Shown piece by piece: positions 1-12,846 of a DNA stretch of 18,924 bases (its first letter is position 1; every line of letters starts with the position of its first letter). The stretch lies in assembly GCA_977017575.1 (NCBI GenBank), contig CDRNVI010000123.1, positions 1-18,924 of the forward strand. The letters are read 5' to 3'. This stretch comes from Paramoeba atlantica. Taxonomy: Eukaryota > Protista > Discosea. The translations under genes were made by a program, and so were the position numbers. The notes beneath the pieces were generated by a model. It did no database searches. It saw nothing but the letters and a program-made list of their open reading frames with translations, and was not told the DNA's origin.

Positions 1-354
1 TTTGGTTATTGTCAATCGACAAAATTTATTTTATTTCCGCCGAAGAATGCAAGAAATGATTGAAAAATATTATATATATTATTTAAAACAATTATTAGTG
101 ATGAAAAGATTATGAAATTATCTTTTAGTAATATTAGATTATTATTAAGTTCTTATAATATAAATATAAATACTATATTAAATATATATAATAATAATGA
201 AATATCAAATTATAAAAATATTATGGTTTTGAAAAATAAAAATTTATATAAAAATATGACTAATATATATTCTAATAATAAATTTTTACAATCATCAAAA
301 ATTTTAAACAGTTGTTTAATTAATTCTAAAAAAATATATAATAATTTTCATTAA
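1..354 (+). CDS. nad11: NADH dehydrogenase subunit 11 (NuoG homolog), 3' part, mitochondrial; open at window start
   Basis: With TGA(61-63)=Trp, frame +1 is open from base 1 to TAA 352-354: FGYCQSTKFILFPPKNARNDWKIL... This resembles the NuoG/Nad11 C-terminal 'PPGxARxDWKI' segment. The end 'NIYSNNKFLQSSKILNSC' resembles the terminal 'FY.T..I.R.S..M..C' motif. It lies directly upstream of nad1, the nuoG-nuoH order. Confidence 0.75.
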
Positions 355-367
355 AAGATTTTAAAAT

Positions 368-1356
368 ATGAATTTTTTTGTTAACTTTAATTATAACAAT
401 ATTAAAATATTTAATTTTAATAGTACCTGTATTAGTAACTGTAGCTATTTTTACAGTTTTTTGAAAGAAAAGTTATGGGTTATATACAACGAAGACAAGG
501 TCCTATAAAAGTAGGTTTTTAGGTATTTTGCAACCTTTTGCCGATGGTTTAAAATTAATGATAAAAGAACCTGTTATACCGGTAAATTCAAATTATTTAA
601 TGTATATAGCAGCTCCAATATTAACATTATTATTAAGTTTAATAAATTGAATATTAATACCTTTTGATGAAAATGTAGTAATATCTAATATTAATATAGA
701 GAGTTTTGTTTATTTTGGGTATTTCTTCTTTAAGTGTATATGGTGTTATTATAGCTGGTTGAGCTAGTAATTCAAAATATGCATTTTTAGGTGCTCTTAG
801 ATCTGCTGCACAAATGATATCTTATGAAGTATCTATAGGTATAATATTAATAACTCTTCTAATAGGTGTAGGTTCTTTAAATTTAAGTAATATAGTATTA
901 GCTCAAGAGGATATTTGATTTATTATACCATTTTTTCCTTTATTTTTATTATTTTTTATATCTTCTGTTGCAGAAACTAATAGACACCCTTTTGATTTAC
1001 CTGAGGCAGAAGCAGAATTAGTTTCTGGTTATAATGTAGAATATTCATCAGTAGGATTTGCTTTTTTTTTTATCGGTGAATATGCTAATATTATATTAAT
1101 GAGTGCATTAAATGTAATTTTATTTTTAGGAGGTTGATTACCACCTTTTAATTTTAATTTTTTTTTACCGCCTATAGTATGATTTACAATAAAAATTGTT
1201 TTAATGATATTTTTATTTATAGTAATAAGAGCCATGTTACCTAGATATAGATATGATCAATTAATGATATTAGGTTGAAAAGTATTTTTACCGTTATCAT
1301 TAGGTTTATTAGTTTTCTATGCAGGTATAATGATTGGTTTTGATTTTTTACCTTAA
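368..1356 (+). CDS. nad1: NADH dehydrogenase subunit 1, mitochondrial (several 1-nt indels near the 5' end and ~700)
   Basis: Motifs [87 protein letters not shown] 368, TAA 1354-1356. TGA falls at conserved Trp sites. Frame changes at ~375, ~460, ~520 and ~700, mostly in T-runs. Confidence 0.97.
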
Positions 1357-1389
1357 TTTTTTAGAATAATAAAATATAAAAAATTTTGA

Positions 1390-2865
1390 ATGTTATTAAA
1401 AATTTTACTTTTTTTACCATTATTTTTTGCGTTTATTTTAAGTTTAATACCTAAGAAAAAAATTATATTATTAAAACAATTATCTTTATTATTTAGTATA
1501 ATAATTTTTTTTTATTGTATTAAATTATTAGGTAATTTTAATATATATTATTCGTATATTCAATTTCAATCAAGTATTAGTTATTATCCTGGTATGGATT
1601 TTAGTATAGGTATAGATGGTATTTCTATTTTTTTTATATTATTAATGAGTTTACTTTTACCTATTTCGTTATTAGTAAATTGAGAAAGTGTGAAATATCG
1701 TAATAAAGATTTTACTATTACTTTATTTATATTAGAATTTTAGTTTTTTGTATTTTTTGTTGTTTAGATATATTTTTTTTTTTATATATTTTTTGAAGGT
1801 GTTTTAATACCTATGTTTTTTATTATAGGTATATGAGGTTCAAGACAACGAAAAATTCATGCTGTTTATCAATTTTTTTTATATACTTTTTTTGGATCAA
1901 TATTTATGTTAGTATCTTTTTTAATAATTTACTTACATGTAGGTTCTACAAATTGAAATATAATTAAATATATTGAATTTTCTGATCAACGACAATTAAT
2001 ATTATGATTAGGTTTTTTTATAGCATTTGCTATAAAAGTACCAATGATACCTTTTCATATATGATTACCAGAAGCTCATGTCGAAGCACCTACAACAGGT
2101 TCTATCTTATTAGCTGGTATTTTATTAAAATTAGGTACTTATGGTTTTTTAAGATTTTTATTACCTTTATTTCCTTATGGAATGAAATTTTTTTCACCTT
2201 TAGTTATAGTTATTTGTATAATTAGTGTTATATACGGTTCGTTAGTAACAATTAGACAAATAGATTTGAAAAAAATAATAGCATATTCATCTGTTGTACA
2301 TATGAATTTTGCAATAATAGGTTTATTTGCTAATAATTTAGAAGGTTTACAAGGTAGTTTATTCTTAATGATTAGTCATGGTATAATATCAAGTTCTTTA
2401 TTTTTTTGCATAGGTGTTTTATATGATCGTTATCATAGTCGTATATTATATTATTATGGAGGTTTAGTACAAGTTATGCCTATATTTGCTGTAATATTTA
2501 TGATTTTTTCTTTAAGTAATATGGGCTTCCCTGGAACAAGTGGTTTTATTGGTGAAATTTTAATATTAATAGGAGTTTTTTTATGAAATATAAAAATTTC
2601 ATTATTATTATTTACTAGTGTTGTTTTTGCAGCTGTTTATTCAATATGGTTATATAATAGATTAATTTTCGGTGAAATAAAAAATTATAATAATATAATG
2701 ATTTATAATAATTTTTATTATAAAAAATGATTTATAAAATTTTCAGATATTACTAAAAGAGAATTCTTTTTAATATTACCATTTATTTTTTTAAATTTTT
2801 TATTAGGTTTTTATCCTGATTTAATTTTTAATGTAACTTATCTATCAATTTTATCACTTATTTAA
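1390..2865 (+). CDS. nad4: NADH dehydrogenase subunit 4, mitochondrial (compensating indels at ~1740-1795)
   Basis: Motifs [98 protein letters not shown]. Stop TAA 2863-2865. Confidence 0.97.
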
Positions 2866-2876
2866 ATTTAATTATT

Positions 2877-4371
2877 ATGAATTTTACAATTATTTTTAAA
2901 AATCAGGAATATCATTCTATATATAATGATATTAAATATTTATTACCAGAAATATTTTTAATTTCTGGTGTTTTATTAATTTTAGTATTTATTATTTTTT
3001 ATTCAAATATTAATGTATATAAATATATAAAATTAGTTTATTGTACTATTAATTTATTGGTATTTATATTAATATTATTTATATTATTAAATATTAATAA
3101 TATAGATAATAATTTTATTATTTCATCTTATTTATTATATAGTGACGGTATAATTTTTTTTTATAAAAATTTATTGTCAATAATTATGATTATATTATTA
3201 GTTACTTCTTATAATTATATGAGATTAAATAAATTATTAATATTTGAATTTTATATATTAATGTTATTATCTTTTATTTGGTATGATAACTTTATTATTA
3301 TCATATGATTTTATTACAGCATATCTTTCTATCGAATTACAAAGTTTATGTTTTTATATTTTAGCGGCAATAAATAGAAATAAGAATAGTTCTATAGAAG
3401 CTGGTTTAAAATATTTTATATTAGGATCATTTTCATCAAGTTTATTAATAGTAGGTATAGCAATTATATATGGTGTAACTGGATTTACTAATTTTTATGA
3501 TTTATCAAAATTATTTGAATTAGGTTTATATAATATAAATTGGGATTCTTATATATTTATAGGTTTATTATTTATTAATATAGGATTATTTTTCAAATTA
3601 GCTATACCTCCGTTTCATATATGATTACCAGATATTTATGAAGGTTCTTTGAAAATAGTATTAGCTATTTTTGCATTATTGCCTAAATTGGCTATATTAA
3701 TATTTTTTTGAAAAATATATTCTATAATTTTAATAAAAGATTTAATCGACTGACAAATATTTTTTTTAATATTTATACTATTATCTTGATTTATAGGTAT
3801 ATTAGGGGCTTTACAATCTAAAAAATTTTCAAGATTAATAGCTTACAGTTCTATTAATCATATGGGTTTTATATTATTAATTTTAATATTAAATGATGTA
3901 TTGACTTTAACTTTATATATAATAATTTATATTTTAGCTTTAATAAATATTTTAATAATATGATTAAATATATTTAAATTTAATAATTATAAAGGGATTA
4001 ATACTATATATCAATTTTTATATATTATAAAATCTAATAATTTATTATTTATAATTTTATTAATAGCTATATTTTCATTAGCAGGAATACCACCATTAGC
4101 TGGATTTTTCAGTAAATTTTTTATTTTCATTAGTGCATTAAAACAAAATTATTATTTATTAGTAGTAATTGGACTTTTATTTAGTGTAGTTAGTTGTTTT
4201 TATTATTTAAGGTTAATAAAAATTATTATGTTTAATAATAGTTTTTATTGATTTTTTTTAACTCCTTTAAAAAGAAGTTATGCTTACATAATTGTTATAT
4301 TATTTGTAGTAAATTCGATTTTTATATTATTATTGCCTTTTTTATTAGAATATTTAAATTATATAATATAA
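2877..4371 (+). CDS. nad2: NADH dehydrogenase subunit 2, mitochondrial (one frameshift at ~3275-3290)
   Basis: Motifs YLSIELQSLCFYILAA, SIEAGLKYFILGSFSS, FKLAIPPFHIWLPDIYEGS, RLIAYSSINHMG, SLAGIPPLAGFFSKF, SVVSCFYYLRLIK. It follows nad4 (nuoM-nuoN order). Stop TAA 4369-4371. Confidence 0.95.
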
Positions 4372-4383
4372 TAATAATAATTT

Positions 4384-4989
4384 ATGAAGTATTTATATTT
4401 AAATCAGTTAATTTCAAGTAATTATAATATATCTTTACATAAAAAAAATAAATGAGGTAGACAACAAATTAATAATATAATTGGTTGATGTAAATTACAT
4501 AATTATGTAATTATAGATATTGTTTCTATATTTTTTAATATAAAAAATATAATTAATATAATTAATTATATTTCAACTAAATTAGGTATATCTTTATTAT
4601 GTTTATTATCAGATAGTAATATAATTAATACTTCATTAAAAAGAGTAAAAATAAAAAATTTTTATATGGTATATTTAGATAAAATTTATGGTTTTATATC
4701 TAATTTTTATATGTTTATTAAAAAAGGTCGAAAACATTATAAAAATATAGTTAATTATAGATCAAAAAGGTTACCTGATATAGTATTTATGTCAAAAGAT
4801 AGTTGAAAAGATTATAATAATTTTTTTAAAATATTTTTAGAATATAAAATATTATCTATAAAAAACACATCATTTTTAGAAAAGGATATTCATATTTGTT
4901 ATAATATTATGGTTAATAATTCTTTAATTATATATAATTTATGAAAATATATATATAAGCAAAATAGAATTTTATTTAAAAAATGTTAA
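4384..4989 (+). CDS. rps2: Probable mitochondrial ribosomal protein S2 (highly divergent), 201 aa
   Basis: Open with TGA=Trp: MKYLYLNQLISSNYNISLHKKNKW...IIGWCKLHNYVIIDI...IYGFISNF...RLPDIVF. The layout matches S2: early W, 'yi.G......iidl', 'G.lsN', 'lPd.i'. The position after nad2 fits. Similarity was judged by eye only. Confidence 0.6.
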
Positions 4990-5696
4990 AAGTAAATTAT
5001 AAAAAATTAAATTTAATAAGAGTTTATAAAAGAGATCTTTGAGGTAGAATAATATTAAATAGAAAATTATTATTAATTAGAAATTATATTATTAAATTAT
5101 TAAAAATAAAAAAATTTAAATATAATAAAAGAATAAATTTTTATAGGATTAATAATTTTGAGAAACCTGTATATTTTAGAAGAAGAACTAGATATGGTAA
5201 ATATTTTATTTTACGAAGACAATTTAGAATTTTTTATGGTTTTTTAAGTATTAAAAATATAAAAAAAATCATAAAAAAAAGTTTTAAAAAAAAATATGCT
5301 TTAAGTTATTTTATTTATATGATGGAATCTAGATTAGATGTATTAGTTTATAGATTACATTTAGTTAAAAGTGTTAGATCAGCTAGACAATGAATATTTA
5401 ATGGTAATATTATTGTTAATAATAATATTATAATTAATCCACAATATAATTTAAAAAAAGGTGATATATTAACTTTAAATAAAAAAAAAATATTATATTT
5501 TAAAAAAAAATTATATTATAATATAAAAACAAAAAATTGATCTCGAAGTATTATACCTAATTATATTGAATATGATTATAATAATTTTGTTTTTAAATTT
5601 ATAAGTCTTAATATATATGATGTACCTTTTTTTGCTCCGGTTACTTCTTATACTTTTTTAAATATAATGAATTTTTATACAAGATATTATTTTTAA
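4983..5696 (+). CDS. rps4: Mitochondrial ribosomal protein S4, 237 aa; overlaps the upstream ORF by 7 nt
   Basis: Intact with TGA=Trp. S4 motifs: KRDLWG, YGKYFILRRQFRIFYG, MESRLDVLVYRL, SVRSARQWIFNGNIIVN, PQYNLKKGDIL, IPNYIEYDY. Confidence 0.88.
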
Positions 5697-5811
5697 TTTA
5701 TTAAAATAATAATATCTTTAAACTTGATCTTTTTTTGTTTTGTGTGTTTATTTATCGTTATTACACATAAATTTATTATAATAATAATTATGTATTTTAA
5801 GATAAATAATT

Positions 5812-7311
5812 ATGGACGCTAATAATCAGCAAAATAATATTTATTTTGGAATTGTAATTAAAGTTAAGGATGGTATTGCAACAATTAAAGGATTAGAAAA
5901 CGCTAAAGCAGGAGAAGTTTTAGAATTTTCTAGTGGTGCTAAAGGATTAGCATTAAACTTAGCTGAAAATGAAATTAGTTCTGTTATTTTTGGTAATGAA
6001 CAATTAATTAAACAAGGGGTTCGAGTCAAAAATACAGGTAAATTAATGACTATTAATATTTCTTCTAAATTATTAGGTAGAGTTATTAATGCTATAGGTG
6101 AGCCTATAGATAATGATACAGCTATTGCTGCAACAGAAGTTAAAAATGTTGAGCAAAAAGCAGTAGGTATTATCGCTAGACAATCTGTTCATGAACCTAT
6201 GTTAACAGGTATGAAATCTATAGATTCTTTAATTCCTATAGGTCGTGGTCAACGTGAATTAATTATTGGTGATAGACAAACAGGTAAAACTTCTATAGCT
6301 GTCGATACTATTATTAATCAATTAAATTATAATAATAATGTTGATTTTAAAAATGTTAATTTATATTGTGTTTATGTAGCTATTGGTCAAAAAAAATCAA
6401 CAGCTGCTAGAATATTTAGTACTTTACAATCATTTCAATCAGCGCAATATACAGTTATTGTAAGTGCATTTGCTTCTGAATCTGCATCATTACAATATTT
6501 AGCACCTTATGTAGGTACTTCTATAAGTGAGTATTTTAGAGATAATAAAAAACATTGTGTCATTATATATGATGATTTAACTAAACATGCTGCCGCTTAT
6601 AGACAAATGTCTTTATTATTAAGAAGACCACCAGGTAGAGAAGCTTATCCAGGAGATGTTTTTTATTTACATTCTAGATTATTAGAAAGATCTTCTAAAT
6701 TATCTACTAAATTAGGTTCAGGTTCAATAACCGGTTTACCTGTTATTGAAACATTAGAAGGAGATGTTTCGGCTTATATTCCAACTAATGTTATATCTAT
6801 TACAGATGGTCAAATATTTTTAGATACTGAACAATTTTATTCAGGTATAAGACCAGCAGTAAGTGTTGGTTTATCGGTTAGTAGAGTTGGTGGAGCTGCA
6901 CAACCTAAATTAATGAAATCATTAGCAGGTTCTTTAAAGGTTGGTTTAGCCCAATTTAGAGAAGTTGAAAGTTTTGCTAGTTTAGGTTGTGATATAGATC
7001 CTGTTACTCAACAATTATTAGATCGTGGTTATAGATTAACTGAATTATTTGTACAAAGTAGATTTAATAATTATTCATTAGATTTATCTTTATTATCAGT
7101 TTTTGCAGGTTCTAAAGGTTTTTTTGATAAATTAGCTATAAATAAAATAAATGGTGTATTTGAAGAAATGGTTTTAGAAAGTAAAAAATTATTTTGATTA
7201 CCTTTTTTTCAATTTTTAAATGATGTAATTCATCCTGATAAAGTTGGTCTAAATTATAACTTTTTAGAAAGTTTTTTAGGCTCTTATAATAAATGATGTA
7301 TTAATATTTAA
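5812..7311 (+). CDS. atp1: F1-ATP synthase alpha subunit, mitochondrial, 499 aa
   Basis: P-loop [58 protein letters not shown]. It reads through TGA 7195 and TGA 7294 to TAA 7309-7311. Confidence 0.98.
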
Positions 7312-7316
7312 AAAAA

Positions 7317-8336
7317 ATGATTAATTTTGTAAATAATATAATTTTTTCAAATTTAGAGGCAGATTATGCTTTACCTGGACAATTAGGTTTTCAATACCCA
7401 GCTAATACTATAGCTCGAGGAATTATTGATTTGCATAATCATATTATGTTTTTTTTAGTTTTTATTGTTGTATTTACTTTTGCTATGATTTATTTCACTT
7501 TAAGTACATTTACAATAAATAATAATAGTAATTTAGAGATTTTTAATAAAGTAAAAAATTTTTATAATGTAAGAATTTCGCATAATACATTATTAGAAAC
7601 TCTTTGAATTATAATACCAAGTTTAATATTAATATCTATAGCAATACCGTCTTTTGCTTTATTATATGCTATGGAAATATCTGGTGTAAGTCTGTTAACA
7701 ATGAAAGTTACAGGACATCAGTGATATTGATCTTATTCTTTTGTATTTAGTTTAGATAATCCTCAAATTGTATATGATATTGCGAGTAATACAAATATAG
7801 AGTTAGGAGGTTCTTTTTCAAATAATATAGCTGAATTTAGTTTCGATAGTTATATGGTACCTACTAATGAATTATCAGATAAAGGTTTACGTTTATTAGA
7901 AACTACAAATCCAGTAGTATTGCCTGTAGATACTTTTATAAAAGTATATGTAACAGCTAGTGATGTATTACATTGTTGAGCTGTCCCTTCATTAGGTATA
8001 AAAATAGATGCTTGTCCTGGTAGGTTAAATCAGGTAAATTTATTTATAGATAGAATTGGTCATTTTTATGGTCAATGTAGTGAATTATGTGGTGTAAATC
8101 ATGGTTTTATGCCTATTGAAATATATAGTATAACTAAATTAGATTATATTACATATTTATGTTTAGCTTGTGAAGATTTTAGAAATAATTCGTTTAATCA
8201 ACTAATAAATTATTATCATTATTTTTATGAAGATGGAAGTAATGCTATTGTTTTTACTAGAGGTTTCTATGATTGATGACAAGATCAACTTAATTTATCA
8301 ATAAAAGAATTTTTAAATAAAGAAAATAGTATATAA
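7317..8336 (+). CDS. cox2: Cytochrome c oxidase subunit 2, 339 aa, with insertions and a C-terminal extension
   Basis: Motifs [45 protein letters not shown], and the CuA ligands DVLHCW...[15 protein letters not shown]. No frameshift. Stop TAA 8334-8336. Confidence 0.98.
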
Positions 8337-8339
8337 AAT

Positions 8340-9209
8340 ATGATTAATAAATTTAAACATTTTCATTTTTGACATATTGTAACAATTAGTCCATGACCTT
8401 TATTATTATCTATGTTTGCATTATCAATGCCAGTAGGTTTAGTAACTTTTTTTCAAGGATTTTATTATGGTGTACCTGTATTTTTTATAGGTTTAATTAT
8501 GGTAATATTTATTATATGTTTATGATTTAGAGATATAGTAATTGAAGCAAGTTATGAAGGTCATCATACTAAACAAGTTCAATCAAGCTTAATTATAAGC
8601 TTTTTACTTTTTATTTTTTCAGAAGTAATGCTTTTTGTAGCTTTTTTCTGAGCTTTTTTTCATTCAAGTATTTTTCCTACAGTAGAATTAAATTGTAGTT
8701 GACCTCCCGTAGGAATGAGTGAAATAATTATGGATCCTTTTGGTATTCCTTTATTAAATACTTTATTATTATTAACATCAGGTGCTACTTTAACTTTAGC
8801 ACATTTATATTTAAAACAAGGATATATGGATAAATGTTTATTAACTATGGTTGTTACAATTGTATTTGCTGTATTATTTTTATCTTTTCAGTTTTATGAA
8901 TATAGTGTTTCTGCTTTTGATATTTCAGATGGTGTTTATGGTTCAACTTTTTTTTGTTGTACTGGTTTACATGGTTTTCACGTTATTGTTGGTACTATAG
9001 CTTTAAGTATGACTACTTATCGTATATATTTATCACATTTTTCACGTAATCACCATTTAGGTTTTGAATTTGCAGCTTGATATTGACATTTTGTTGATGT
9101 AGTATGATTATTTTTATATATGATTATATATTGTTGAGGTAGTGATATGGTAGCTCCTCTTATATTAGAATTAAAAGATGGAAAAGAGAATATTTTTTAT
9201 TTAGTATAA
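8340..9209 (+). CDS. cox3: Cytochrome c oxidase subunit 3, 289 aa
   Basis: Motifs HIVTISPWP, WFRDIVIEASYEGHHT, FIFSEVMLFVAFFWAFFH, PLLNTLLLLTSG, FDISDGVYGSTFF, TGLHGFHV, FEFAAWYWHFVDVVWLFLY. Stop TAA 9207-9209. Confidence 0.98.
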
Positions 9210-9216
9210 ATTTACA

Positions 9217-10689
<1,473 letters not shown>

Positions 10690-10892
10690 ATTATATTAAT
10701 TTATATTTTAAAAATATTTATTGTACCATTATAATACCTAATTTAATTAAAATAGGTATTGTACGAGGTAAGAATGAAGATGAATTTTTTAAAATATATT
10801 ATGATGTATTTTATAATTTAAAAAATTCTAAAAAAAGTAATTTATTTTTACGTTTTTTATAAAATTAGTAAAATAATAATTTTACTAATATA

Positions 10893-10966
10893 ATCCCTCT
10901 GGTCTAATTGGTTAAGACATATCACTCATAATGGTACTGATATAGGTTCAAGTCCTATGGGGGATA
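10893..10966 (+). tRNA. tRNA with CAU anticodon (elongator Met or lysidine-modified Ile)
   Basis: Cloverleaf: acceptor ATCCCTC/GGGGGAT, anticodon arm TATCA-CTCATAA-TGGTA, T arm ATAGG-TTCAAGT-CCTAT. Confidence 0.92.
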
Positions 10967-10967
10967 A

Positions 10968-11039
10968 ATAGTTGTAGTGTAGTGGTTAACATATTAGTCT
11001 TCAAAACTAATGACATAGGTTCAAATCCTATCAACTGTG
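10968..11039 (+). tRNA. trnW: tRNA-Trp(UCA)
   Basis: Anticodon arm TTAGT-CTTCAAA-ACTAA (TCA at 11001-11003), T arm ATAGG-TTCAAAT-CCTAT, acceptor ATAGTTG/CAACTGT. Consistent with TGA=Trp in the CDSs. Confidence 0.93.
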
Positions 11040-11071
11040 TTAATTATAGATGATATAATTAAATATAATAA

Positions 11072-11143
11072 AATAGGGTGACTGAAAGGTAAAGTATTGT
11101 TTTTTGGCAGCAAATCGTGTAGGTTCGAGTCCTACTCCTAAGT
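11072..11143 (+). tRNA. trnQ: tRNA-Gln(UUG)
   Basis: Anticodon arm TTGTT-TTTTGGC-AGCAA, T arm GTAGG-TTCGAGT-CCTAC. Acceptor AATAGGG/TCCTAAG is mismatched at positions 1 and 2. Confidence 0.88.
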
Positions 11144-11156
11144 ATTAAAATTTTTT

Positions 11157-11229
11157 TTAAGGATAGTATAAATGGTTATTATAATTGATTGCAAATCTAT
11201 AGATATCGGTTCGAGTCCGTTTCCTAACT
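11157..11229 (+). tRNA. trnC: tRNA-Cys(GCA)
   Basis: Anticodon loop TTGCAAA, T loop TTCGAGT, U73 discriminator. Acceptor TTAAGGA/TCCTAAC is mismatched at positions 1 and 3. Confidence 0.88.
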
Positions 11230-11256
11230 TTTTTAAATTTAATATAAATATAATAA

Positions 11257-11329
11257 ATACCTATAGTTTAATTGGTTAAAACATGCATTTGATAAGTGCA
11301 AATTGATAGTTCGAGTCTATCTGGGGTTA
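11257..11329 (+). tRNA. trnI: tRNA-Ile(GAU)
   Basis: Anticodon arm TGCAT-TTGATAA-GTGCA, T arm GATAG-TTCGAGT-CTATC. Acceptor ATACCTA/TGGGGTT is mismatched at positions 2 and 3. Confidence 0.92.
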
Positions 11330-11338
11330 TAAATAAAA

Positions 11339-11412
11339 AAATAGTTAGCTCAATTGGTAGAGCATCGGCCCTTTTAAGCTGAGGGTTATAGGTTCGAGCC
11401 CTATACTATCTA
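11339..11412 (+). tRNA. trnK: tRNA-Lys(UUU)
   Basis: D arm GCTC-AATTGGTA-GAGC. Anticodon arm TCGGC-CCTTTTAA-GCTGA has an 8-nt loop, probably one spurious C. Acceptor AAATAGT/ACTATCT is mismatched at position 2. Confidence 0.85.
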
Positions 11413-11418
11413 TAAAAA

Positions 11419-11491
11419 TATGGAATGGTGTAATAGGTTAGCACATCGAGTTGTGATTTCGATAGTATGAGTTCAAGTCTCATTTCTTACC
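11419..11491 (+). tRNA. trnH: tRNA-His(GUG)
   Basis: Anticodon arm TCGAG-TTGTGAT-TTCGA, T arm ATGAG-TTCAAGT-CTCAT, C73. Acceptor TATGGAA/TTCTTAC is mismatched at positions 1, 2 and 3. Confidence 0.9.
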
Positions 11492-11557
11492 TAAATTAAG
11501 AATAATAAAATTAATAAAATATATATTTTATTAAAATTTTTTTATTAATTTGTAAAG

Positions 11558-11631
11558 ATAGATGTGATGGAATTGGTAGACATATTAGTTTTAGGCACTA
11601 AATTTTAGGGGTTCGAGTCCCCTCATCTGTA
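11558..11631 (+). tRNA. trnL: tRNA-Leu(UAG), short variable loop
   Basis: D region ATGGAATTGGTAGACAT (Leu type), anticodon arm TTAGT-TTTAGGC-ACTAA, T arm AGGGG-TTCGAGT-CCCCT, acceptor ATAGATG/CATCTGT. Confidence 0.88.
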
Positions 11632-11666
11632 TTGTATGTATAAAAAAAGAAAAAAATATTTTTTAT

Positions 11667-11737
11667 AAGGATGTAGTTTAAAGGTAAAATATCTATTTTG
11701 GGTGTAGACGTTATAGGTTCAAATCCTATCGTCCTGA
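11667..11737 (+). tRNA. trnP: tRNA-Pro(UGG)
   Basis: Anticodon arm TCTAT-TTTGGGT-GTAGA, T arm ATAGG-TTCAAAT-CCTAT. Acceptor AAGGATG/CGTCCTG is mismatched at position 1 (A1xG72). Confidence 0.92.
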
Positions 11738-11750
11738 TAATTATAATAAC

Positions 11751-11824
11751 AAGGAGGTAGCTTAATAGGCTAAAGCTTTAACCTGTCGAGTTAAAAGATG
11801 AGGGTTCGAATCCCTTCCTCCGCA
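11751..11824 (+). tRNA. trnD: tRNA-Asp(GUC)
   Basis: Anticodon arm TTAAC-CTGTCGA-GTTAA, T arm GAGGG-TTCGAAT-CCCTT. Acceptor AAGGAGG/CCTCCGC is mismatched at positions 1 and 2. Confidence 0.92.
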
Positions 11825-12125
11825 TAAAATATAATAAAATATGTTTATTTTATTACTATATAATCAAGATGTTTTGTATATAAAATATAAAATATTATCT
11901 ATTATATCTATTATATCAATTTATGATAAATGTACATTTACCATATGAAATAACAGTCATAAAACATACATATTTTACTTAAAATTTTTTTAAAAAGAGA
12001 AAAAATTATAAAATAAATAATTATAGTAATTTAAAAGATTTTATTTTTTTAATAAAATAAAAAAATTAGTAAATTAATATGATTATTTATTTTAGATATA
12101 TCTTACTTTAATAATATATGATTTA

Positions 12126-12197
12126 TTTTTCTTCGTCTAATGGTTAGGACATTGCTCTTTCACAGCAGAAATAAGGGTTCAAATCCCTTAGAAATGA
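12126..12197 (+). tRNA. trnE: tRNA-Glu(UUC)
   Basis: D arm GTCT-AATGGTTA-GGAC, anticodon arm TTGCT-CTTTCAC-AGCAG, T arm AAGGG-TTCAAAT-CCCTT. Acceptor TTTTTCT/AGAAATG has U1:G72 and a U2xU71 mismatch. Confidence 0.9.
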
Positions 12198-12370
12198 AAT
12201 TATTTTATCCGTATTAATTTAATTTAATAAAATTTTTTTGTAAATTTTTGAATCTATTATACACTGATTTAAGTATATTATTTGTCACATATAATAAGGG
12301 GGGTTTGGGGGGTTTGTATAAGAGATAATATTTTATTTTCATATACAAAAATTTTTATTAATTATTTTTT

Positions 12371-12453
12371 AATGGTGTGATAGAATTGGTAAACATGATA
12401 GACTTAAAATCTATTGCCTTTTAGGCTTGAGGGTTCGAGTCCCTCCTCCAATA
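12371..12453 (+). tRNA. trnL: tRNA-Leu(UAA)
   Basis: Anticodon arm ATAGA-CTTAAAA-TCTAT, long variable arm GCC-TTTTA-GGC, T arm GAGGG-TTCGAGT-CCCTC. Acceptor AATGGTG/CTCCAAT is mismatched at positions 2 and 6. Confidence 0.92.
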
Positions 12454-12471
12454 ACGATGAGTTAATTATTT

Positions 12472-12544
12472 TTTAAGATGGAGTAATAGGTTAACTCAGT
12501 GGTCTCATGAGCCACAGATGTAGGTTCGAGTCCTACTCTTCTTA
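12472..12544 (+). tRNA. trnM: tRNA-Met(CAU), probably initiator
   Basis: Anticodon arm GTGGT-CTCATGA-GCCAC. The D stem GAGT/ACTC gives a purine11:pyrimidine24 pair, typical of fMet tRNAs. Acceptor TTTAAGA/TCTTCTT is mismatched at positions 1-3. Confidence 0.85.
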
Positions 12545-12615
12545 TATAATTACGTAAATATTATTATGGATTACATTTGAATATGTAATCAATTTGAATT
12601 TTTATTAATTAGTAA

Positions 12616-12846
<231 letters not shown>

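Follow-up and report, generated by a model that had tools for sequence, protein, structure and literature searches.

Acceptor-stem mismatches in the mitochondrial tRNA genes of a Paramoeba-like amoeba suggest 5' editing of the transcripts

Organization of the tRNA gene cluster

The window analyzed here is a complete contig (C123) of 18,924 bases from a 45.7-Mb assembly of 248 contigs. Bases 1-12818, across which the G+C content ranges from 14 to 30%, encode nad1, nad4, nad2, atp1, cox2, cox3 and cox1, behind which lie the clustered tRNA genes and the beginning of atp9, with UGA read as Trp. The window is chimeric, and from base 12819 onward it consists of bacterial DNA. In atp1 the closest named relative is Paramoeba pemaquidensis (80% identity), and metagenome proteins reach up to 87%. 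The gene order atp1-cox2-cox3-cox1 is common to the window, P. pemaquidensis and related metagenome mtDNAs. Because of the atp1 identity and this common order, sequence comparison identifies bases 1-12818 as the mitochondrial DNA of a Paramoeba-like amoeba (Amoebozoa).

TGA codons split cox1 into pieces of no more than 81 residues. The frameshifts found in cox1, nad1 and nad2 are private to the window. All three genes are intact on another contig of the assembly, C131, which rules out insertional editing of the Physarum type as the cause of the frameshifts.

ARAGORN finds 13 tRNA genes at 10893-12545, and all of them lie on the forward strand. The genes do not overlap and are spaced by 1 to about 300 bases. 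As ARAGORN gained pairs in several genes by displacing the 5' end by one base, the canonical registers were taken from the Rfam tRNA model. For tRNA-His, the second tRNA-Met and tRNA-Gln this model yields local alignments only, which start at model positions 5, 4 and 3, respectively, because their first acceptor pairs fail. The registers were also set by an independent procedure that is blind to acceptor pairing. It is anchored on the anticodon position, the D stem, U8, A14 and A21, with the 3' strand placed from the T arm, and it was run on the majority sequence of 15 contig copies of the cluster. The anchor and Rfam registers coincide in 12 of the 13 genes; tRNA-Cys is a tie, which was decided by the Rfam model. 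The ARAGORN boundaries of six genes were discarded, since the Rfam model and the D-arm anchors both contradict the one-base shift of the 5' end.

The cluster opens with the first of two tRNA-Met(CAU) genes (10893-10966), whose acceptor stem is wholly paired and for which no edit is predicted. It is followed by tRNA-Trp(UCA) (10968-11039), which decodes UGA as Trp and is wholly paired with a U2:G71 wobble. ARAGORN, the Rfam model and the anchors all place these two genes. The preliminary description counted 13 genes but gave the feature as 11072-12544, a span that omits this unmismatched pair at 10893-11039. The third wholly paired gene of the window, tRNA-Leu(UAG) at 11558-11631 (Rfam, anchors), again has a U2:G71 wobble.

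Each of the other ten genes carries mismatches in the acceptor stem. In tRNA-Gln(UUG) (11072-11143; local Rfam alignment from model position 3, anchors) the mismatches are A1:G72 and A2:A71, with predicted edits A1C and A2U. tRNA-Cys(GCA) (11157-11229; Rfam coordinates) has a U73 discriminator and the mismatches U1:C72 and A3:A70, which would be repaired by U1G and A3U. The Rfam model and the anchors both place the next two genes, tRNA-Ile(GAU) at 11257-11329, with U2:U71 and A3:G70 (predicted U2A, A3C), and tRNA-Lys(UUU) at 11339-11412, with A2:C71 (predicted A2G). All three outer pairs fail in tRNA-His(GUG) (11419-11491; local Rfam alignment from model position 5), where U1:C72, A2:A71 and U3:U70 would require U1G, A2U and U3A. 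Its discriminator is C73 and the base at position -1 is A, so that G-1 is not encoded.

Further along the cluster, three genes are again placed by both the Rfam model and the anchors. tRNA-Pro(UGG) (11667-11737) has the single mismatch A1:G72 (predicted A1C), and tRNA-Asp(GUC) (11751-11824) has A1:C72 and A2:G71 (predicted A1G, A2C). tRNA-Glu(UUC) (12126-12197) combines the mismatch U2:U71 with a U1:G72 wobble, and the predicted edit is U2A, together with U1C if position 1 is resynthesized as well. tRNA-Leu(UAA), which has a long variable arm (12371-12453; Rfam coordinates, anchors), is mismatched at A2:A71 and U6:U67, and A2U is predicted. The second tRNA-Met(CAU) (12472-12544; local Rfam alignment from model position 4) has U1:U72, U2:U71 and U3:C70 (predicted U1A, U2A, U3G). 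Compared with the edits predicted earlier, the affected positions agree, but U1A of this tRNA-Met had been omitted, and the prediction for tRNA-Glu is now refined by the possible U1C.

Of atp9 the window retains the 5' part (12645-12818, forward strand), the gene being truncated at the chimeric junction. Contig C131 carries the whole gene and, behind it, a wholly paired tRNA-Arg(UCU) and a tRNA-Tyr(GUA) with mismatches at positions 1, 2 and 3, for which G1, G2 and A3 are predicted in the mature tRNA. The native cluster thus comprises 15 tRNA genes, 11 of them mismatched, as compared with 10 of 13 in the window.

Distribution of the mismatches

Counted over the 13 genes of the window, acceptor positions 1 to 7 have 6, 8, 4, 0, 0, 1 and 0 mismatches. 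Non-standard pairs therefore make up 18 of 39 at positions 1-3 versus 1 of 52 at positions 4-7 (Fisher p = 1.8e-7), the sole inner mismatch being U6:U67 of tRNA-Leu(UAA). With the Rfam and anchor registers, these totals reproduce exactly those of the preliminary description, and the list of mismatches derived anew for each tRNA is identical to the earlier one. In the other stems, 4 of 52 D-stem pairs, 1 of 65 anticodon-stem pairs and 1 of 65 T-stem pairs are mismatched. The predicted changes are of all kinds and not transitions alone, with A to C, U to G, U to A and A to U among them. With the predicted edits introduced, the tRNAs take full cloverleaf minimum-energy folds, and the energy of the acceptor helix is lowered by 1.5 to 6.4 kcal/mol.

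A noisy contig might produce mismatches through sequencing or assembly error, and the window does have private errors besides the frameshifts mentioned above. The extra C at 11369, in tRNA-Lys, is absent from 14 other contigs; the anticodon loop of 8 nucleotides that it creates is an artefact, and because of this loop ARAGORN left the gene unnamed. The A at 12382, in tRNA-Leu(UAA), is likewise private, the 14 other contigs having a G that restores the pair G12-C23.

The acceptor stems are a different matter. The cluster is present in these 14 further contigs at 99-100% identity, and nearly all differences in the 15-way alignment are singletons, mostly one-base indels, none of which falls at acceptor positions 1-3. 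For eleven of the 13 tRNAs the sequence recurs unchanged in 13 or 14 of the 14 other contigs, and five independent related mtDNAs have a matching positional pattern. The agreement among the 15 copies and with the five relatives excludes read error as the cause of the mismatches, and this explanation, to which next to no probability attaches, is in practice refuted. The earlier statement that random read error is not responsible is borne out by the 14 other contigs, which agree with the window at all acceptor positions 1-3.

Comparison with relatives and the choice of template strand

The same mismatch analysis was applied to the mtDNA of P. pemaquidensis (L020) and to four metagenome mtDNAs. 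In P. pemaquidensis 23 of 57 pairs are mismatched at positions 1-3 and 0 of 76 at positions 4-7; within the 21.5-kb stretch, 15 of 19 tRNA genes are mismatched at positions 1-3 and none at 4-7. The corresponding fractions for the metagenome mtDNAs are 14/27 and 0/36 (L021), 18/45 and 2/60 (L022), 22/36 and 0/48 (L024), and 4/9 and 0/12 (L025). No tRNA gene lies within the examined part of a further related contig (L023). The mtDNA of P. pemaquidensis (KX611830; Tanifuji et al. 2017, PMC5601477) is thus like the window both in its atp1-cox2-cox3-cox1 order and in having its mismatches confined to positions 1-3, whereas it belongs to another species and its tRNA genes are arranged differently. 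By word search, the main text of that paper refers to tRNA solely where the annotation method is described and to editing solely in connection with the kinetoplastid.

Comparison of orthologous genes separates the two parts of the acceptor stem. Where both sides of a pair have changed, 53 of 55 pairs at positions 4-7 are still paired versus 14 of 45 at positions 1-3. Where one side has changed, the numbers are 19 of 24 and 3 of 44. These differences in co-variation indicate that selection at the DNA level keeps pairs 4-7 and does not keep pairs 1-3. Such relaxation of the three outer pairs fits what post-transcriptional repair of these positions would allow.

Mismatches by themselves do not reveal the strand that is repaired. 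In the window, each of the 18 mismatches at positions 1-3 has A or U on its 5' side, and the content of A or T is 36 of 39 at positions 1-3 and 24 of 39 at positions 70-72. The unmismatched tRNAs of the window are also A/U-rich at their starts (AUC, AUA and AUA), and the base bias of the 5' strand is for this reason a weak argument when taken alone. Positions 70-72 as a whole are not more conserved than positions 1-3 (42% versus 40% identity) among these highly diverged relatives.

Single positions are more informative. tRNA-Pro has G72 in 4 of 4 genomes, and C72 is present in tRNA-His in 3 of 3 and in tRNA-Cys in 3 of 4, while A and U predominate at position 1 of these three tRNAs and a base complementary to base 72 occurs there in a single gene, tRNA-His of L021. 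This stability of base 72 beside a variable base 1 favors the 5' strand as the one replaced, with the 3' strand as the template. Copying of the 3' strand would give the canonical ends C1-G72 in tRNA-Pro and tRNA-Gln and G1-C72 in tRNA-His, tRNA-Cys and tRNA-Asp. The preliminary description had derived the same ends for tRNA-Pro (C1:G72) and for the last three (G1). The discriminators, U73 in tRNA-Cys and C73 in tRNA-His, agree with reading the 3' strand as template.

The opposite arrangement, known from some animal mitochondria, in which the 5' strand would guide repair of the 3' strand, gains something from the ambiguity of the mismatches and from the A/U-rich starts of the unmismatched tRNAs. 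It is highly improbable in view of the base 72 conserved among relatives where position 1 varies, and it would erase the canonical G1-C72 and C1-G72 ends. Overlapping genes are the usual setting of 3' editing (PMC4284800), whereas the genes described here do not overlap. The defective 3' strand of the animal mitochondrial systems is not found here either, and in all amoebozoan cases studied it is the 5' side that is edited (PMC4284800).

Probable 5' editing and the candidate enzyme

By combining the gene sequences with what is known of other amoebae, it is possible to describe how these tRNAs would mature. The genes are most probably working mitochondrial tRNA genes whose transcripts undergo post-transcriptional 5' repair, as in Acanthamoeba, a reading to which we assign a probability of roughly 85%. 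Following the processes in Acanthamoeba and Dictyostelium, the 5' nucleotides would be removed down to the innermost mismatch, and 3'-to-5' resynthesis with positions 70-72 as the template would then create Watson-Crick pairs. If removal in tRNA-Glu extends to the innermost mismatch, C would take the place of U1, the wobble partner of G72. tRNA-His would in addition need a G-1 placed opposite C73, since this discriminator is present and G-1 is not encoded.

In every feature that DNA can show, the genes fit the gene-level signature of Acanthamoeba-type editing. Mismatches of this kind occur in 12 of the 15 mitochondrial tRNAs of Acanthamoeba, where sequencing of the RNA revealed replacement of the 5' bases (PMC4284800). 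RNA sequencing has also established editing in Dictyostelium, Polysphondylium and Physarum, in no case beyond the first three pairs (PMC4284800), and some chytrids share 5' editing within these pairs (PMC4284800, PMC3561963). The repair is carried out by Thg1-like 3'-5' polymerases, whereas for the preceding removal of the mismatched bases no nuclease is known (PMC4284800, PMC3561963). Acanthamoeba castellanii, an amoebozoan that reads UGA as Trp, resembles the window in the restriction of mismatches to 1:72, 2:71 and 3:70, in the share of genes affected and in the occurrence of base changes of all kinds. Editing there is known from RNA, whereas here it is predicted from the genes; a further difference is that cox1 and cox2 form separate genes in the window.

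Dictyostelium discoideum is similar to the present case in its gene-level signature, in the post-transcriptional G-1 of its mitochondrial tRNA-His and in its canonical nuclear Thg1. In that organism DdiTLP3 serves mitochondrial 5' repair and DdiTLP2 provides G-1 of the mitochondrial tRNA-His.

The search for Thg1 and Thg1-like paralogs that had been proposed earlier was run on the assembly and yielded one gene of the Thg1 superfamily, located on contig C151 at 44301-45456 on the minus strand and composed of three exons. The queries were the Pfam models Thg1 and Thg1C, an exon of the gene itself and two bacterial Thg1-like proteins (TLPs) obtained by tblastn from plasmid records, and all of them led to this gene only. 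Searched exon by exon, the gene matches Pfam Thg1 with an E-value of 3.5e-21 and Thg1C with 4.8e-42. Its product matches the structure of human THG1L (3otb) with E = 1.8e-56, and its translation contains the HINNLYN motif, which to our knowledge Thg1-like proteins lack. Because of this motif and the match to human THG1L, the sequence identifies the gene as a canonical tRNA-His guanylyltransferase (Thg1) rather than a member of the Thg1-like proteins. Its introns assign it to the host, since the genes of Perkinsela are reported in PMC5601477 to be intron-free.

A Thg1-like paralog was not found in the 45.7-Mb assembly, which is a mixture of host, symbiont and bacterial DNA and from which part of the host genome may be missing. 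A search with the Thg1 exon of bacterial and archaeal genomes gave no TLP match, and no NCBIfam model matches this exon. This negative result may stem from an incomplete host genome in the mixed assembly or from the limits of the first-pass filter used in the search. The situation is the reverse of that in Acanthamoeba, which has two Thg1-like proteins (AcaTLP1 and AcaTLP2) and no canonical Thg1 (PMC3561963), whereas here one canonical Thg1 and no TLP were detected. It also differs from Dictyostelium, where three Thg1-like paralogs exist besides Thg1 (PMC5041481) and of which no counterpart was found. It is unlikely, but conceivable, that the amoeba edits most of its mitochondrial tRNAs and is truly devoid of a TLP, so that the single canonical Thg1, acting in both compartments, or an unrelated enzyme would perform the repair. 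Yeast Thg1 does not repair 5'-truncated tRNAs (PMC4284800).

An alternative is that the mismatches stay in the mature tRNAs, being either tolerated or carried by relic genes whose function is covered by imported cytosolic tRNAs; that no Thg1-like repair enzyme was found in the assembly speaks for it. Some animal mitochondrial tRNAs do function in spite of imperfect stems. Nevertheless, three consecutive mismatches would leave tRNA-His, the second tRNA-Met and tRNA-Tyr with an acceptor helix of four pairs. The rest of each gene is clearly under selection, as judged from the 53 of 55 double changes that remain paired at positions 4-7 and from the other stems, whose pairing is put at 96-98%. Decay at exactly three positions of one strand in many lineages is unlike the behavior of relics, and retention of the mismatches is thus very unlikely.

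The reading that the 5' ends are edited after transcription is supported by the signature, the lineage and the relatives. The earlier proposal that the same system operates here is upheld to this extent; its enzymatic part is not, as only a canonical Thg1, and no Thg1-like protein, was found. No paper was found that describes 5' tRNA editing in Paramoeba-like amoebae, in agreement with the earlier suggestion that the instance may be new. On the evidence of its genes, the cluster is thus a well-supported further case of a process already known, in a group for which no earlier account was found.

The point of wider interest is the enzyme, only canonical Thg1 having turned up. For annotation, the cluster illustrates that tRNA finders shift the 5' ends of such genes or mislabel them. 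The relatives display the relaxed selection that a repair system would permit, with positions 4-7 co-varying strictly and positions 1-3 drifting freely. The Paramoeba-like amoeba and the five related mitochondrial genomes can thus be added to the organisms predicted to repair the 5' ends of their mitochondrial tRNAs.

Contig structure and sequence errors

The mitochondrial DNA (mtDNA) is represented in the assembly by overlapping pieces on about 15 contigs of 18-34 kb each. The contig that constitutes the window is a chimera with its junction at 12818/12819. The atp9 gene is broken in mid-codon after 12818, and it runs on normally in C131, a second contig carrying overlapping mtDNA. The segment 12819-18924, with a G+C content of 35-44%, is bacterial DNA. 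The genes in it encode signal peptidase II, UvrC and a patatin-like lipase, and this part too has frameshifts. Near base 24,000, C131 too changes to DNA of about 45% G+C.

Three mitochondrial protein genes, nad1 (345-1353), nad2 (2832-4368) and cox1 (9205-10686), are frameshifted in the window and have intact reading frames on C131. These frameshifts are indel errors; insertional RNA editing was rejected as their cause because the frames are intact on C131. The nad4 gene (1357-2862) is split in the window and on C131 alike. Two further changes fall within tRNA genes: an extra C at 11369 gives tRNA-Lys an anticodon loop of 8 nt, and an A in place of G at 12382 breaks the G12-C23 pair of tRNA-Leu(UAA). 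As both are absent from the 14 other contigs, they are errors private to the window contig.

Duplicated tRNA genes and intergenic spacers

Tandem tRNA duplications are found in two related metagenome mtDNAs: tRNA-Lys and tRNA-Ile in L022 (15796-15974 and 16483-16662), and tRNA-Met in L024 (7568-7758). The acceptor-stem sequences and their mismatches are identical between the copies.

The long A/T-rich spacers between the tRNA genes of the window contain imperfect palindromes (11492-11544, 11994-12109 and 12220-12372), the arms of which are 25 to 56 nt long, 70-78% complementary and, in two cases, separated by only 3-4 nt. In the genome search these spacers match themselves on the opposite strand. 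In such A/T-rich DNA the palindromes may be due to chance. A G-rich run at 12300-12320 (two G5-6 TTT units) is conspicuous within the A/T-rich spacer between tRNA-Glu and tRNA-Leu(UAA).

The Thg1-superfamily gene and tRNA-His

Across the 45.7-Mb assembly a single gene of the Thg1 superfamily was found: L001, on the minus strand of contig C151 (G000) at positions 44301-45456. The gene is divided into three exons, and its product carries HINNLYN, a motif of canonical Thg1. Translation from an ATG lying upstream in the same frame would add a low-complexity extension of 91 residues, the reality of which is doubtful. A Thg1-like paralog was looked for across the same 45.7 Mb and none was detected.

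The tRNA-His gene (window 11418-11491) has the discriminator C73, and its position 1 is preceded by A; the extra 5' nucleotide G-1 is therefore not encoded. Post-transcriptional addition of G-1 opposite C73 would be needed.
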